Notes: generated by a model not told the origin, from the sequence alone. Counted from the first letter of the stretch, positions 44,251 to 53,637 are shown. The stretch: 64,000 nucleotides of DNA from Setoptus koraiensis (GCA_048013815.1 CM106585.1:11346001-11410000), one strand, 5' to 3'. Program-made: numbers and translations.

Positions 44251-45753
44251 CTAGTTGACCTCACGAATACCATTAGTATTGGTGATTAACAAATCGTTAA
44301 TACAATCTATTGTCTTCTTCAAATCTAGATCCGATGGTGAACTATCCCTAGAGGTAATAGGACTCTCTTTGACTTCAATGCGATCATCCTTTTCATTGAA
44401 TATAGTTAGCTTGCTATCCACACTGGATTCGAGCGGAGAAATCACACTTTGTCTGGCATCATGAAGATGAGGTTCGCTATTGTTTAGGTGAGTCATTGTA
44501 GCTTGTCTTTCATTTTGATCAAGCGCCTCTGAGCTAGTATACAAAACTTCATTATTCTGATCATCATCAATCTGTGTCACAATATCATGATTCATCATGT
44601 CATCTGATATGATATTCAAAAAACCATCGCATGCTGAACCAAGGCCAGAATCGCACTCCGACGAAGACGGATCCAATAAATGATTGTATCGCCTTTCAGC
44701 ATGTATCTCTTCACTAAGTGACTCTAGATCATTGAGGGTAGCCGCATATTTTCTCTTAGTTGAGACTATCTCCCGTGTTATGAGATCTATCTCAGCTTTG
44801 ATAGAATTTAGTCTCGCATTGAACCTGTTTGCTTCATCGAAATAAGGTTTTGATCTTCTAATGGAGTTGCTGAATTCTCTCTCAAGCTTACTGACGTGAT
44901 TTTGCGCGAGCAACATCTTCTTTGTTTTATCTTGATGCCTCAATTGACTTTCAGCTTTTAGTTTTTCAGCTTCAAGTAACCTTTGGATGGCCTGATTCAT
45001 TTCCTCACTACTTACATTGAGATTTTCTGAATGTAAAGCATGCATTGAGCATTTAGTTGCAGGGCTTTTAGACGGCAAATCGTTTGTTGTATTATCTGTA
45101 ATAAGATTTGACTCGGGGGCGTTTTGATCATTCACGACGATATCATTGTTATTGTCGGATTGATTTATAGTTGATTTGTCTGCAGCATTACACTTTGCTA
45201 TGGATTCTTTGAAACTTGAATTGGCATCATTAGTATTGTTTTCTTCATTTTTTGGAGTATTTTCATTAGTCAGTGCTGATGCTGCGCATTTGAATTTCTT
45301 TTCAGCTAATCTTATAGCTTCCTTGGCATCTGAGTGAAAGTTGTTGGCTTGTTCAAACTGAACACATGCCTCTTGACATTCAATTTGAGTTTGTTCAGCG
45401 GACAATTTGGCTGCAAGATATTGACGGCCTCTCTTAATTGATTGAATTCCTAGGGTCTGAGAGATAATTTTGAGTCGATCGGTGGATTGTTTCAGAGCAT
45501 TTCTGAATGTATTGTTGGATTCATCAAATTGTTTCTCCAACAAATTGATCCTAGCGGCCAGTTTATTGAGCAACTCGAGTCCGTCGCTGATTTTTACATC
45601 TACTTGTCCGCCGGCATCGGTGTCTGACTGACCGAGACCGGCTAATCTGGAGGTCGAAGCAGTTTCATTTGACTGAACAGATTGAGGCCTGCTCAACTGA
45701 TCATGATCATTGTCGCTAATAGTTACTTGTTCCTGACTTTTTTGATTGATCAT
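44251..45753 (-). CDS. SH3BP5: SH3 domain-binding protein 5 homolog (SH3BP5/parcas, Rab11 GEF), intronless
   Basis: LELLNKLAARINLLE, FEQANNFH..AKEAIRLAE, IRRSKPYFD and YAATLNDLESLSEEIHAERR match the SH3BP5 coiled-coil blocks. Confidence 0.9.
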   Translation of the reverse strand: MINQKSQEQVTISDNDHDQLSRPQSVQSNETASTSRLAGLGQSDTDAGGQVDVKISDGLELLNKLAARINLLEKQFDESNNTFRNALKQSTDRLKIISQTLGIQSIKRGRQYLAAKLSAEQTQIECQEACVQFEQANNFHSDAKEAIRLAEKKFKCAASALTNENTPKNEENNTNDANSSFKESIAKCNAADKSTINQSDNNNDIVVNDQNAPESNLITDNTTNDLPSKSPATKCSMHALHSENLNVSSEEMNQAIQRLLEAEKLKAESQLRHQDKTKKMLLAQNHVSKLEREFSNSIRRSKPYFDEANRFNARLNSIKAEIDLITREIVSTKRKYAATLNDLESLSEEIHAERRYNHLLDPSSSECDSGLGSACDGFLNIISDDMMNHDIVTQIDDDQNNEVLYTSSEALDQNERQATMTHLNNSEPHLHDARQSVISPLESSVDSKLTIFNEKDDRIEVKESPITSRDSSPSDLDLKKTIDCINDLLITNTNGIREVN

Positions 45754-47742: not shown

Positions 47743-49044
47743 TTACCGATCCGTAATGTAAAGACTACAAAATTCAAAAGCGTTCACAAACATCTTGTTC
47801 CAGGGGCTCACGTCGATACGCTTCTCGCCGGTTTTCCACTCTGGCAAAACGTAAGGCCACTGCCACATTTGGGTGCATCTTTCCGGATGAGGCATCATGG
47901 CCAAATGTCTGCCATCGGTGCTGCATATTGCAGCCACAGCAAATTTGCTTCCATTTGGATTTAATGGATATTGTTGTGTTGGCTCCCCAAAGTCGTCAAC
48001 ATATTTCATGGCGATACGTTCGTCTTGCTCTGCTTTATATTTGTCCTTGCCACTGAGCTCAAACTTGCCCTCGCCATGAGCCACCCAAACACCAAAACAA
48101 CTTGACTGCATCTGTTTAAGCATAATAGAATTAGTGTTAGCCTCAATTTTGACCGGTTCTTTGATATTTTTGAGCGAGGCCTCCTTGCTGAAATTACAAT
48201 CTAGACCAGAGTGACTCGCCAGGGCCATTTCTATGAGACAAACCAACAGTCCTCCGTCGCTGATGTCATGGCCGGCAGTGCAAATTCCGTCTTTAATCAG
48301 TTGTTGAACCATGTTAAAGCCAGATTTCAGCAGAGAGGCATCGTTGATTTCGGGCGCTTCATCCACGGCCAGCTGGCCAAATGATTGAGCCAGAGCTGAG
48401 CCTCCCAATCTTGGCTTAAAATGCTCTTGAGCGTTACAATTGTGCGACATATTCAGCCAGATTAAGCGACTAGTTGGCAGACACTCCATAATGGGTGTCA
48501 CTTTACATCTGATATCGGGCACCGGCGCATAGGAGCTTATAACCAACGTACCAGGCGATTTCACTATCTCTTGTTCGGGCCTCTCACTGTCTAGCTCATC
48601 ACTACTTGATGATTTTTCTGATCTTTCGGGTGCTTTAATCAGGCTAGAGTTATTCCTATCCACTGTGGCCATCATAGACAGAGAATCTTTGCCACCGTCA
48701 ACGGCAATACCAAGCTCTGACATTAGCTGACACATGGCCTGGCAAGCGTCCACCAGCTTGGCCCCTTCGCCCGGCAACTTGGCCGCCCACATCCAATTAG
48801 CGCTGCACTTGACATCCTCCAAACAGGTGACTACACAAAACATCATGTTTGTGAGAGCCTCGGCAACGCTCATGTGTGCGTTTGCCTTGGGACTGAGCAG
48901 GCCCTTGATCGGTTGTTCGCCAATTGATGTAACAGAACCTCGAAAATCGAAATGACTCAGCAATATCAGTCCATAGTCACCGATTGGCGTATGCAACGGG
49001 CCCAAACATTGTTGGCCGGCTATCAAACCGGTGACACAACGGAC
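47743..49044 (-). pseudogene. PFAS: 5'-truncated, internally deleted phosphoribosylformylglycinamidine synthase (PFAS/FGAMS) fragment
   Basis: RCVTGLIAGQQCLGPLHTP, GEQPIKGL, DVKCSANWMWAAKLPGEG, VDGGKDSLSM, GHDISDGGL, WVAHGEG, YPLNPNGS and MPHPER are present. The N-terminal about half and the glutaminase segment with the GVCNG nucleophile are absent. There is no natural ATG. The frame is open over about 1.3 kb. Confidence 0.8.
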
Positions 49045-50536
49045 CACTTCGCGGAAGAAAAGTTCAGCATCCTCGTCTTTACCACCGCCGAATCGGGGAA
49101 GATCCGAAAGCACCAGGGTTGGGTTCTGACCTAAAGCGGTAACTAGGTCACTGACCGCTGACTCACAAGGTAAACCTCCTAGGTCGGACACTCAGAATAC
49201 GCCCACTATAGTCTTTTTGAACTCTCCAGTGTACCCAGAACAAGAAAACGCTAGTCTCATGCTCAACTTCGGCCAAAAAAATTCTAAATTTTTCTTGGGA
49301 TTTTCTGAAATTAGACCTTGTCAGAGAGATTTACACTTGTTGTGTTCATGTTTACATCGGCCTTATTATCGATCGTATTCCTACGGGGTCTTGACATGTT
49401 CAACTTGAGCTTGGACTTCGATGAACCACGCTCTGCTACCAAAAATGTCGTGCCTAAGGAGCAGAGTATGTAGTTTATACCTCGGGCAGCGACGTTTATG
49501 CGTTGGATTCAGAATACCCTTCGGTACGGGCGTGCGGGAGTGAACCGCGGTGAATATTAGATGGTGAATATCAGAAATGGCCGAGCGGTAACCTAACGCG
49601 AGGCACTGTTTGTTTTACCCTGTGTATATACGCTAGCAAGTGACTTTCCTCGGGATGCGTTATGTGTCGGTAGAATTGTATCGAATAAGCGTGATATTAT
49701 AGAGGAAATCAGGCTGGAATTTTACACCGAAAGAGATTGGCGGTCCGAGGCAGATTTTGGTATAGGAGTCGTTGTATATGACAATAAATGAGTATCTCAT
49801 GGAAACTAGGTCTGCATTTATTTCTATGCCTTGGAAAGGCGAAGTCTATCGACAAGTGTGTTCGTTAATGCGCTGCCGTTGGTGCTGTTTTGTTAAGTTC
49901 GGAAGTCACCGACTTGTAGTTGAATCTGAGGCAACGAAGATTCTTGGTATGGGATGTGATATTACAACTTAGTTAGCCTCGAATACCCGATTGTATCGGT
50001 GGATACGTACAGCAATGGTGTGACTGAGTAGGTAACAATATATGTGAATTATCTGCCGAAAAGGTCCGTTCCTTTGAGGCAGTTCTTAGTGTTGATTGGT
50101 TGGTGTATCAGTTTGCATTTATGTCAGAATTTCTGCATTGGAATAATAAGCGGGGGTGTCGTGGTATTTGGGTTTCGAGCAACGCTAATTAGCGGATTTA
50201 CTGAATTTTATTGGGTACATGTATTATATCGTTATATGTTTTTCGAGTTATGTCTTACTCCTGCGTGTCGATAATCGGTACTGATTCCTAGTCTCCTTTT
50301 TGGGATCCAACTTATCACGACAACTTGAAAAGTTGTTAGTCATCCTCTTTTGAGTCTCTATTCTTAATTTCAACCGTCGTCTCGGCGCCAAAGCATTGCG
50401 TTATCTGTGTTTGTTATGGTCATACGCGCTCCTTGTGTTGAGCAGTGGCATGGTCGTATCCGCTCATGGATATCCGCGCGGAGGGGCGTGTTAGCTAGAC
50501 CGGCTATGTGCTACCGATGCCCATCGCGGCATCACA
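49045..50536 (-). mobile_element. Putative truncated Ty3/gypsy-like LTR retrotransposon: short LTR (about 50391-50536), PBS-like TGGCGCCGAGAC (50390 downwards), about 1.2 kb leader, gag N-terminal fragment
   Basis: On the minus strand the element begins TGTGATG. TGGCGCC follows about 145 nt later. LPRFGGGKDEDAELFFREV resembles gypsy/Arc-type capsid starts (F.G...D...F). The composition differs from the flanking CA-rich DNA. I saw no second LTR, TSD or pol. Confidence 0.5.
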
Positions 50537-52173: not shown

Positions 52174-53637
52174 ATGAGCGAAGGAAATTATTTAAGTCCT
52201 AATGCGTTCGCCGCCTCACCTATGTCTTTAAAAGTCGAAAGCCTGGGATTAGAAAATTTACCCATGTCTGGCCTAACATCTCCACCTAGTGTTGCGCCAT
52301 GCACTTCACCTCAGACAAGTGGACAAACTATTAGAAATACCAGTGCCGATAGCGGCAATAGTTCAATTGGGGGATTACCACAGCAACAACAACAGATTCC
52401 ACAACAGAATGGACTATCAGTTAATAGTCACAGTTCCGCAAATAATAATAACAACGATATAAACAATAATGGAAATTCAAATAACTCCACTACCAATTCA
52501 TCAACTAATGGATTCTACCCTCAAGGTCACCCCCTTTATAACAGTAAACATTTATGCTCCATATGTGGCGATAAGGCTAGCGGAAAACATTATGGTGTTT
52601 ACAGTTGCGAGGGCTGTAAAGGTTTCTTCAAGCGCACTGTCAGAAAGAACTTAACCTATCAATGCAGAGAAGAACGAAACTGTCTAATTGACAAAAGGCA
52701 GAGGAATCGCTGTCAATGTTGTAGATATCAAAAATGTCTTGCCACGGGGATGAGACGCGAGGCTGTTCAGGAAGAAAGACAACGAACGAAAGAATCAGAA
52801 GATAATGAAGTTGAAAGCACTAGCAATTCCCATGTTGATTTCGACAGATTGGTCGGTTCGGTAGTCCATGGAGGCGTTAATGGTTGTACTCCTGATACAA
52901 ACTCAAATAACATGAACGTAGACAGTGTTATCAAAATGGAAACTATCCAAATGGATGATGTAAAGAATGTTCTATCACCATCGCCTCTAGCTACGCGAGA
53001 ACTAAGTTCATCGCTTGTGCAAGCAGCACAAAATCAAATAGACTCATTAATCAAATGGGTATTGGACGAACCAAGATTCACATCTTTGTTAATCGAGGAT
53101 AGGTTGCAATTGTTGAAGACTTATTGGAATGAGTTACTCATCGTAGACATAGCCTACAAGTCTATGGCACTACCAAATTCTGAAGATGACCCAAATTTGA
53201 TGATCTGGCCTGATATTGTTATAAACAGAGCTACGGCCAACCAAGCTGGATTAAGTACAATGTTTGATAGACTGACGACGGAAATCGTTGTCAAATTCAA
53301 GGAAATGAAATTCGACTCAAAAGAACTGAATTTGTTGAAACTGATAATATTATTTAACCCAGAAACACAAGGCTTGAAATCAAGCCAACCTATAGAGAAT
53401 GTACGAACTTTGATATTCTCTGAATTAGAACAACATTGCAGATTTTATTACTTACAGGAACAACCTAATAGATTTGGGAAGTTATTATTAAGATTACCCG
53501 CTTTAAGAAGTATTGGATTGAAATGTGATGACACACAACAGTTGATGTTTGTTCAAATGTGTTGCGGAGGACTCAATATTGACTCTTACCTACTCAGAAG
53601 GTTTCAAACACCCACACACCCATCGCCACGAAGTTAG
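52174..53637 (+). CDS. usp: Retinoid X receptor / ultraspiracle (NR2B), intronless, with a divergent ligand-binding domain
   Basis: [35 protein letters not shown]-box [10 protein letters not shown], and H10 [19 protein letters not shown]. Confidence 0.93.

Follow-up and report, generated by a model that had tools for sequence, protein, structure and literature searches.

A young chimera of a partial PFAS copy and the 5′ end of a long terminal repeat retrotransposon in Setoptus koraiensis

Chimeric retrocopies mediated by long terminal repeat (LTR) retrotransposons have been reported from Drosophila, mosquito, zebrafish, chicken and mammals (Tan et al. 2016, Genome Res 26:1663, PMC5131818). 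Each holds a partial copy of an mRNA, is truncated at its 3′ end, lacks a poly(A) tail and a target-site duplication (TSD) of the L1 type, and shows short overlaps at its junctions, their median length in Drosophila being 6 bp. The same study also documents that more than two template switches can contribute to one product, and a product made by integrase is expected to carry both LTRs. As summarised there, maize Bs1, the yeast Ty1 capture products and HERV-K/FAM8A1 consist of cellular gene pieces fused to gag-side sequence, in which an open gag–host frame is possible; retroviral oncogene transduction, cited in the same paper, generates gag–onc fusions by non-homologous recombination during reverse transcription. 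Such chimeras are already described in flies, plants and yeast. Here we analysed a 64,000-nucleotide stretch of the Setoptus koraiensis genome (GCA_048013815.1 CM106585.1:11346001-11410000; the window hereafter), in which positions 50536-47743, read on the minus strand, join the 5′ end of an LTR retrotransposon to a partial duplicate of the purine-biosynthesis gene PFAS. We interpret this feature as a young, non-functional chimera that was probably made by template switching of reverse transcriptase (RT). It would otherwise be an ordinary pseudogene; its interest lies in being a young and fully dissectable host-gene capture outside the insects and vertebrates where such chimeras have been catalogued, with the parent gene, the source element family and all junctions readable to the base. 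Furthermore, its one-LTR structure bears on how cDNA enters chromosomes, by integrase or by end-joining at breaks.

On the minus strand the feature is ordered as 5′ LTR, primer-binding site (PBS), gag start, nested repeat, gag, PFAS piece A, PFAS piece B and a new tail, the pieces meeting at three junctions (J1 to J3). In the following list, C2 is the contig that carries the closest related element, and L007 and L006 are the extracted loci of that element and of the parent PFAS gene, respectively.

50536-49446, minus strand: complete 5′ LTR of 1091 bp, TGTGATG...CACGACA; three other copies have the same ends
49441-49424, minus strand: PBS TGGTAGCAGAGCGTGGTT, 18 nt, 5 nt after the LTR; complement of tRNA-Met
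49397-49321, minus strand: gag start with ATG at 49397, comprising codons 1-25 and two bases of codon 26; aligned to the beginning of the 344-aa gag open reading frame (ORF) of the C2 element
49320-49166, minus strand: nested copy of a dispersed repeat, 155 nt; missing from the C2 gag
49165-49048, minus strand: gag codons 26-64 (ESAVSDLV...LPRFGGGKDEDAELFFRE); 92% DNA identity to the C2 gag (L007 7931-8048)
49047-49049, minus strand: J1, gag to PFAS, in frame, with a 2-nt overlap (AA); gag codon 64 joined to PFAS residue ~668
49049-48143, minus strand: PFAS piece A, parent residues ~668-970, a PurM_N-like domain and part of AIRS_C (PF22689, PF02769)
48143-48147, minus strand: J2, an 816-bp (272-codon) in-frame gap relative to the parent, with overlap GA and one odd base
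48147-47768, minus strand: PFAS piece B, the latter half of the GATase domain (parent residues ~1243-1366); matched to L006
47767-47743, minus strand: J3 and the new tail, eight unrelated codons and a TAA in unique DNA

The downstream part of the feature, from VVRCVTGL on, is PFAS. It matches three Pfam PFAS domains and human PFAS (9n9w) with E=1e-98, and it runs without a stop to 47743, just as an earlier note on this DNA had read it from RCVTGL onwards. The parent gene lies 11 Mb away on the same contig (G000:C1:22519036-22523148; L006 3037-7149). It is a 1370-codon ORF within a 1403-codon open frame, uninterrupted and without introns, and it contains all five Pfam families of eukaryotic PFAS with a complete GATase_5. 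Piece A is 98.7% identical to L006 5039-5945, the 12 differences comprising 8 synonymous and 4 nonsynonymous changes, and piece B, away from the junction, is identical to L006 6763-7134 over 372 nt. The central claim of the earlier note, a host-gene capture in which the 5′ end of gag is fused in frame to PFAS, is therefore upheld by a multi-copy LTR element on one side and PFAS sequence 98.7-100% identical to its parent on the other. That note was silent on the division of the PFAS part into two pieces with an 816-bp in-frame gap, and on its end 13 nt before the parent stop codon.

The captured fragment is far from complete. Parent residues 1-667 are missing, as is the internal block of 272 residues, which corresponds to GATase_5 profile positions 1-137, the first half of the glutaminase. 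Accordingly, the Pfam matches of the copy comprise only PF22689, part of PF02769 and GATase_5 positions 138-260, and residues 1-681 and 933-1215 of human PFAS have no counterpart in it. Given the loss of the N-terminal 667 residues and of the first half of the glutaminase domain, the copy is predicted to be unable to work as a PFAS enzyme, the full architecture not being present. The loss of the glutaminase half at 48143-48147 affects the window copy only; the five-domain PFAS on the same contig is intact, and the locus thus offers no support for a decay of purine synthesis in this genome.

The upstream part is assigned to an LTR retrotransposon because its LTR ends recur with 4-bp TSDs, an 18-nt site for initiator tRNA-Met is present and the coding sequence is homologous to gag. 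A solo LTR on contig C2 (G000:C2:13284931-13286021; L010 4932-6022), flanked by the TSD CCTG, is 100% identical to the window LTR over 1091 bp. Both LTRs of the C2 element (C2:24059199-24066886; L007/L009), whose TSD is AGTG, are 96% identical to it. The genome-wide search for the LTR thus returned other copies, including paired LTRs with a TSD, and the upstream segment is neither single-copy nor devoid of gag similarity. The LTR had been correctly noticed before and is multi-copy, but its extent had been put at 50536-50391, whereas the three same-ended copies place it at 50536-49446. What had been called a long leader is within the LTR, and so is the PBS proposed at the time; matching to tRNA 3′ ends did recover a PBS, at 49441-49424. 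The genome contains an initiator-type tRNA-Met gene (L022 1500-1572), and all 18 nucleotides of the PBS are complementary to its 3′ end with CCA added. The full 18 nt also occur in the C2 element, and a 13-nt core is found both there and in an autonomous relative at C1:8.505 Mb. The short ORF beginning MSRPRRNT (49397-49311) is the true gag start, and the gag-like segment with LPRFGGGKDEDAELFFRE is indeed retrotransposon gag, with 92% DNA identity to the C2 gag and 49% protein identity to the gag of the autonomous relative over their common N-terminal part (E=2e-12, tblastn). Only codons 1-64 of gag are retained in the window.

The two related elements place the source family. The C2 element contains an intact 344-aa gag, a pol reduced to a 53-aa trace, the polypurine tract (PPT) AAGAGAGGGTGAAA before its 3′ LTR and a low-complexity insertion of ~1.5 kb within its 5′ LTR. 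Its gag scores 23.9 bits on PF03732 (Retrotrans_gag; cutoff 24.1) and has a C-terminal zinc-knuckle-like motif, CX2CX4HX4C. No host fragment was found in the C2 element, the internal 2.9 kb of which is single-copy and holds only the 53-aa pol trace. The autonomous relative (C1:~8504733-8513879; L025) encodes a 373-aa gag, with 25.9 bits on PF03732, and a 1558-aa pol with the domain order RT, RNase H, integrase; its direct repeats are identical over at least 300 nt. A 710-aa ORF is also present on its opposite strand (L025 7163-9295). Judged from these features, the family is an LTR retrotransposon with Ty3/gypsy gene order, primed by initiator tRNA-Met and producing a 4-bp TSD. The window lineage is low-copy and non-autonomous in this assembly. 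A six-frame search of the genome yielded the window locus, the parent and two gag loci only, and no other copy of the chimera.

Three-way comparison of the window, gag and parent revealed that all three junctions are abrupt, two of the three having 2-nt overlaps. At J1 (slashes mark the breakpoints), gag reads ...TTCCGTGAA/TACAAG, the parent reads ...ACCAAA/GTGGACCGT and the window reads ...TTCCGCGAAGTGGTCCGT, with one substitution (GAC to GTC, D to V) 3 nt into the PFAS side. The PFAS motif that the earlier note had inferred for this position is confirmed by the parent, which reads AAAGTGGACCGT. The microhomology suspected at the same place is not: gag and PFAS overlap by only 2 nt (AA), and GTGGTCCGT is PFAS sequence with one substitution. 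At J2, ...AAAATTGA/CGATTG and ...GGATAGA/AGCTAAC have become ...AAAATTGAGGCTAAC. At J3 the parent reads ...GAATTTTG/CACACAATGTTAG and the window ...GAATTTTG/TAGTCTTTACA, the PFAS match ending 13 nt short of the parent stop codon. The DNA after 47768 is unique in the genome, and word-7 blastn against all element loci found no retroelement remnant downstream of this position. There is no poly(A) tail at the end of the PFAS copy. Nor was a target-site or flank duplication found, the local alignment of the flanks being no better than that of shuffled sequences, 313 of 500 of which reach its score. An apparent GT.TTTACA flank match was rejected as chance.

The gag part is interrupted by a copy of a dispersed repeat that has at least 28 copies in the genome, at 72-98% identity. 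It is bordered by TGA 49323-49321 and TGA 49165-49163, and the extra DNA in gag amounts to 158 bases (155 plus a 3-base duplication). Other copies of the repeat share a common 3′ end (...GGTTTACCTTGTTAG), and their 5′ ends are longer and differ from copy to copy, reaching up to about 600 bp (including L012-L016), a pattern that suggests a 5′-truncated non-LTR retroelement. The window copy has 6-nt inverted ends, CAAGGT/ACCTTG.

This insertion determines what the chimeric frame can encode. The unbroken minus-strand frame 49191-47743 comprises 482 codons, and its first in-frame ATG is codon 106. Translation from the gag ATG at 49397 would end at TAA 49313-49311, within the nested repeat. As had been recognised before, an in-frame ATG at 49260 is closed by TGA 49194-49192; however, both belong to the nested repeat and not to gag. 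Because the repeat lies between the gag ATG and the fusion frame, the locus at present encodes no chimeric protein that starts with an ATG. Before the 158-base insertion, this ATG and the fusion frame were probably continuous, as indicated by coordinate arithmetic and by the intact gag of the C2 element. Splicing-out of the repeat (GT 49316, AG 49163-49162) is unlikely, judging from the weak matches to splice sites. When 12 random substitutions were placed in the parent sequence, the frame stayed open in 59% of the trials (P=0.59). Of the two explanations offered earlier for the clean long frame, a recent event therefore suffices and selection is not needed; the latter is also unsupported given a nested repeat that cuts off the gag ATG. 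The probability that both internal junctions are in frame by chance is about 1 in 9. An exact-protein look-up of the 482-aa ORF returned no record, and a word-indexed protein search with residues 1-110 among proteins of 265-843 aa returned neither gag kin nor chimeric kin; its hits were confined to PFAS fragments from other taxa, with 51-70% identity.

The copy is young, and its divergence from the parent is uneven. Comparison of the 8 synonymous and 4 nonsynonymous differences gave omega 0.13, a value that departs from neutrality in both lineages (P=0.0009) and also from what a neutral copy would show if the parent were constrained (P=0.02). Piece A contains all 12 differences, piece B being free of them (Fisher P=0.023). 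The window LTR and the C2 solo LTR show 0 differences over 1091 bp, for which P<1e-4 at the PFAS rate. Of the four amino-acid changes, three fall at residues common to the parent and the human or the Salmonella enzyme, namely the D in VDR, the A in ISAYA and position 77, which is a small residue in the parent, human and Salmonella enzymes. Codons 136-138 of the ORF (48780-48788) carry three consecutive synonymous third-position changes, and seven of the eight synonymous differences are A or T in the parent but G or C in the copy. In the simplest account, the copying was very recent, and the template was a PFAS allele distinguished from the reference allele mainly by synonymous changes. Alternatively, an unseen master element may have preserved an older capture, or the copy may have been under selection.

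Taken together, template switching is the probable origin, because the PFAS part is a partial mRNA copy with a truncated 3′ end and neither a poly(A) tail nor an L1-type TSD, because it replaces element coding sequence, and because the overlaps are short. In the course of events that we infer, a PFAS mRNA would have been packaged with the element RNA in a virus-like particle. Minus-strand synthesis would then have covered the end of the PFAS coding region, switched to a position 816 nt upstream in that template (J2), extended for another ~900 nt and switched back to the element RNA at gag codon 64 (J1), from where it would have proceeded to the PBS and LTR. The dispersed repeat may have landed in the gag part later, or may already have been present in the source element. 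Two routes could lead to a product with one LTR. A truncated chimeric cDNA might have been end-joined into a chromosome break, a route consistent with an LTR terminus that is exact, an opposite end that is ragged and flanks that share no duplication. Alternatively, a two-LTR chimera might have integrated normally, and a later deletion from inside piece B into the flank might have removed its 3′ part. Moore and Haber, as well as Teng and colleagues, are both said to have observed in 1996 that Ty1 cDNA fragments are captured at yeast chromosome breaks by end-joining. Capture of this kind would give an exact LTR terminus, a ragged end, no target duplication and overlaps of 0-3 nt, as in the window. 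To our knowledge, it is known from experimental yeast systems, and a natural animal case with a host gene piece would be unusual.

The resemblance to the described systems is thus only partial. Like the retrocopies of Tan et al., the chimera contains a partial host-mRNA copy that replaces internal coding sequence of an LTR element. In contrast to them, it has a 5′ LTR only, its overlaps measure 2 nt and its parent is intronless. Bs1, the Ty1 capture products and HERV-K/FAM8A1 have both LTRs, and Bs1 has multiplied, whereas the window chimera is single-copy in the assembly and has one LTR. As in the gag–onc fusions, the frame of an N-terminal part of gag continues into a truncated host coding sequence, an arrangement that is due to RT switches in those fusions and presumably was so here; unlike them, no mobile or expressed product is evidenced, and the captured enzyme fragment lacks catalytic parts.

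Several of these observations weigh against template switching, which the earlier note had proposed and which is the best-fitting mechanism but unproven. The overlaps at J1 and J2, 2 nt each, are close to chance, compared with the Drosophila median of 6 bp. Neither a second (3′) LTR nor a PPT was found in the window, though a product made by integrase should have both LTRs. An RNA intermediate is not demonstrable, because the parent PFAS has no introns to lose. Moreover, the divergence is mostly synonymous, and piece A is 1.3% diverged while the LTR is identical to another LTR, so that an extra assumption is needed: for example, the source allele may have been divergent, or a master copy may exist unseen. 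In a bolder proposal, the gag–PFAS chimera was or is a mobile non-autonomous element carrying a host enzyme fragment. It draws on the contrast between an LTR identical to a solo LTR on another contig and a PFAS part at 1.3% (dS 0.03) from its parent. If true, the capture would be older and the jumps recent, one copy having collapsed to the solo LTR and one having lost its 3′ end here; in a stronger version, the in-frame product would also be, or have been, expressed and under selection. We regard the mobile chimera as doubtful.

An origin at the DNA level, with no RNA step, would account for several of the same difficulties. A break in the gag of a resident LTR element would have been repaired with PFAS pieces, copied or ligated as filler DNA in microhomology-mediated repair, and the rest of the element with its 3′ LTR would have been lost. 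The missing 3′ LTR, poly(A) tail and TSD agree with this, overlaps of 2 nt are typical of end-joining, the parent is on the same contig, 11 Mb away, and a parent without introns leaves nothing in the sequence that demands RNA. Nevertheless, a 1.3-kb filler drawn from 11 Mb away in two collinear pieces would be unusual for such repair. Furthermore, the copied part lies wholly in the transcribed coding region and has the orientation of gag, as expected for a co-packaged RNA. We therefore consider DNA-level repair unlikely, if worth keeping in mind. The insertion of an LTR element into an older DNA duplicate of PFAS, followed by a deletion that fused gag to PFAS, had also been suggested. J1 would then be a simple deletion junction with a 2-nt overlap. 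However, no PFAS sequence is found upstream of the 5′ LTR, the deletion must have removed the 3′ LTR and yet kept gag and PFAS co-oriented and in frame, and the 3′ end of PFAS would still need a separate explanation. This sequence of events is very unlikely.

Retention of the chimera as a functional new gene, with an LTR-driven transcript and a gag–PFAS or PFAS-fragment protein kept by selection, could draw on the 482 open codons, on the two in-frame internal junctions (about 1 in 9 by chance) and on an omega of 0.13, lower than expected if the copy were neutral and the parent constrained (P=0.02). On the other hand, the stop-carrying nested repeat cuts off the gag ATG and leaves codon 106 as the first in-frame ATG; the protein would lack the N-terminal half of the synthetase and the first half of the glutaminase, where the nucleophile is sited; and there are derived changes at conserved residues. 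The frame could stay open by chance (P=0.59), a divergent source allele explains the synonymous excess equally well, and neither a chimeric relative in the word-indexed search nor an identical gene on record was found. Selection for function is thus highly improbable, and from the same features we infer that the chimera is almost certainly dead. An assembly artefact, in which chimeric reads or mis-joins set PFAS beside the retrotransposon, is scarcely credible, because a mis-join would be identical to the parent, whereas the copy has 12 differences, its own 816-bp gap, a private nested insertion and unique flanking DNA. The probable explanation thus remains a partial PFAS duplicate joined to the 5′ end of an LTR retrotransposon by RT template switching.

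The window is eukaryotic in its gene content, and the chimera is placed between two host genes. These are a single-exon USP/RXR-type nuclear receptor with zf-C4 and ligand-binding domains at 52174-53637 on the plus strand and SH3BP5 at 44251-45753 on the minus strand. The start of the LTR is ~1.6 kb from the receptor ATG, and a (TTG)n microsatellite abuts the LTR.

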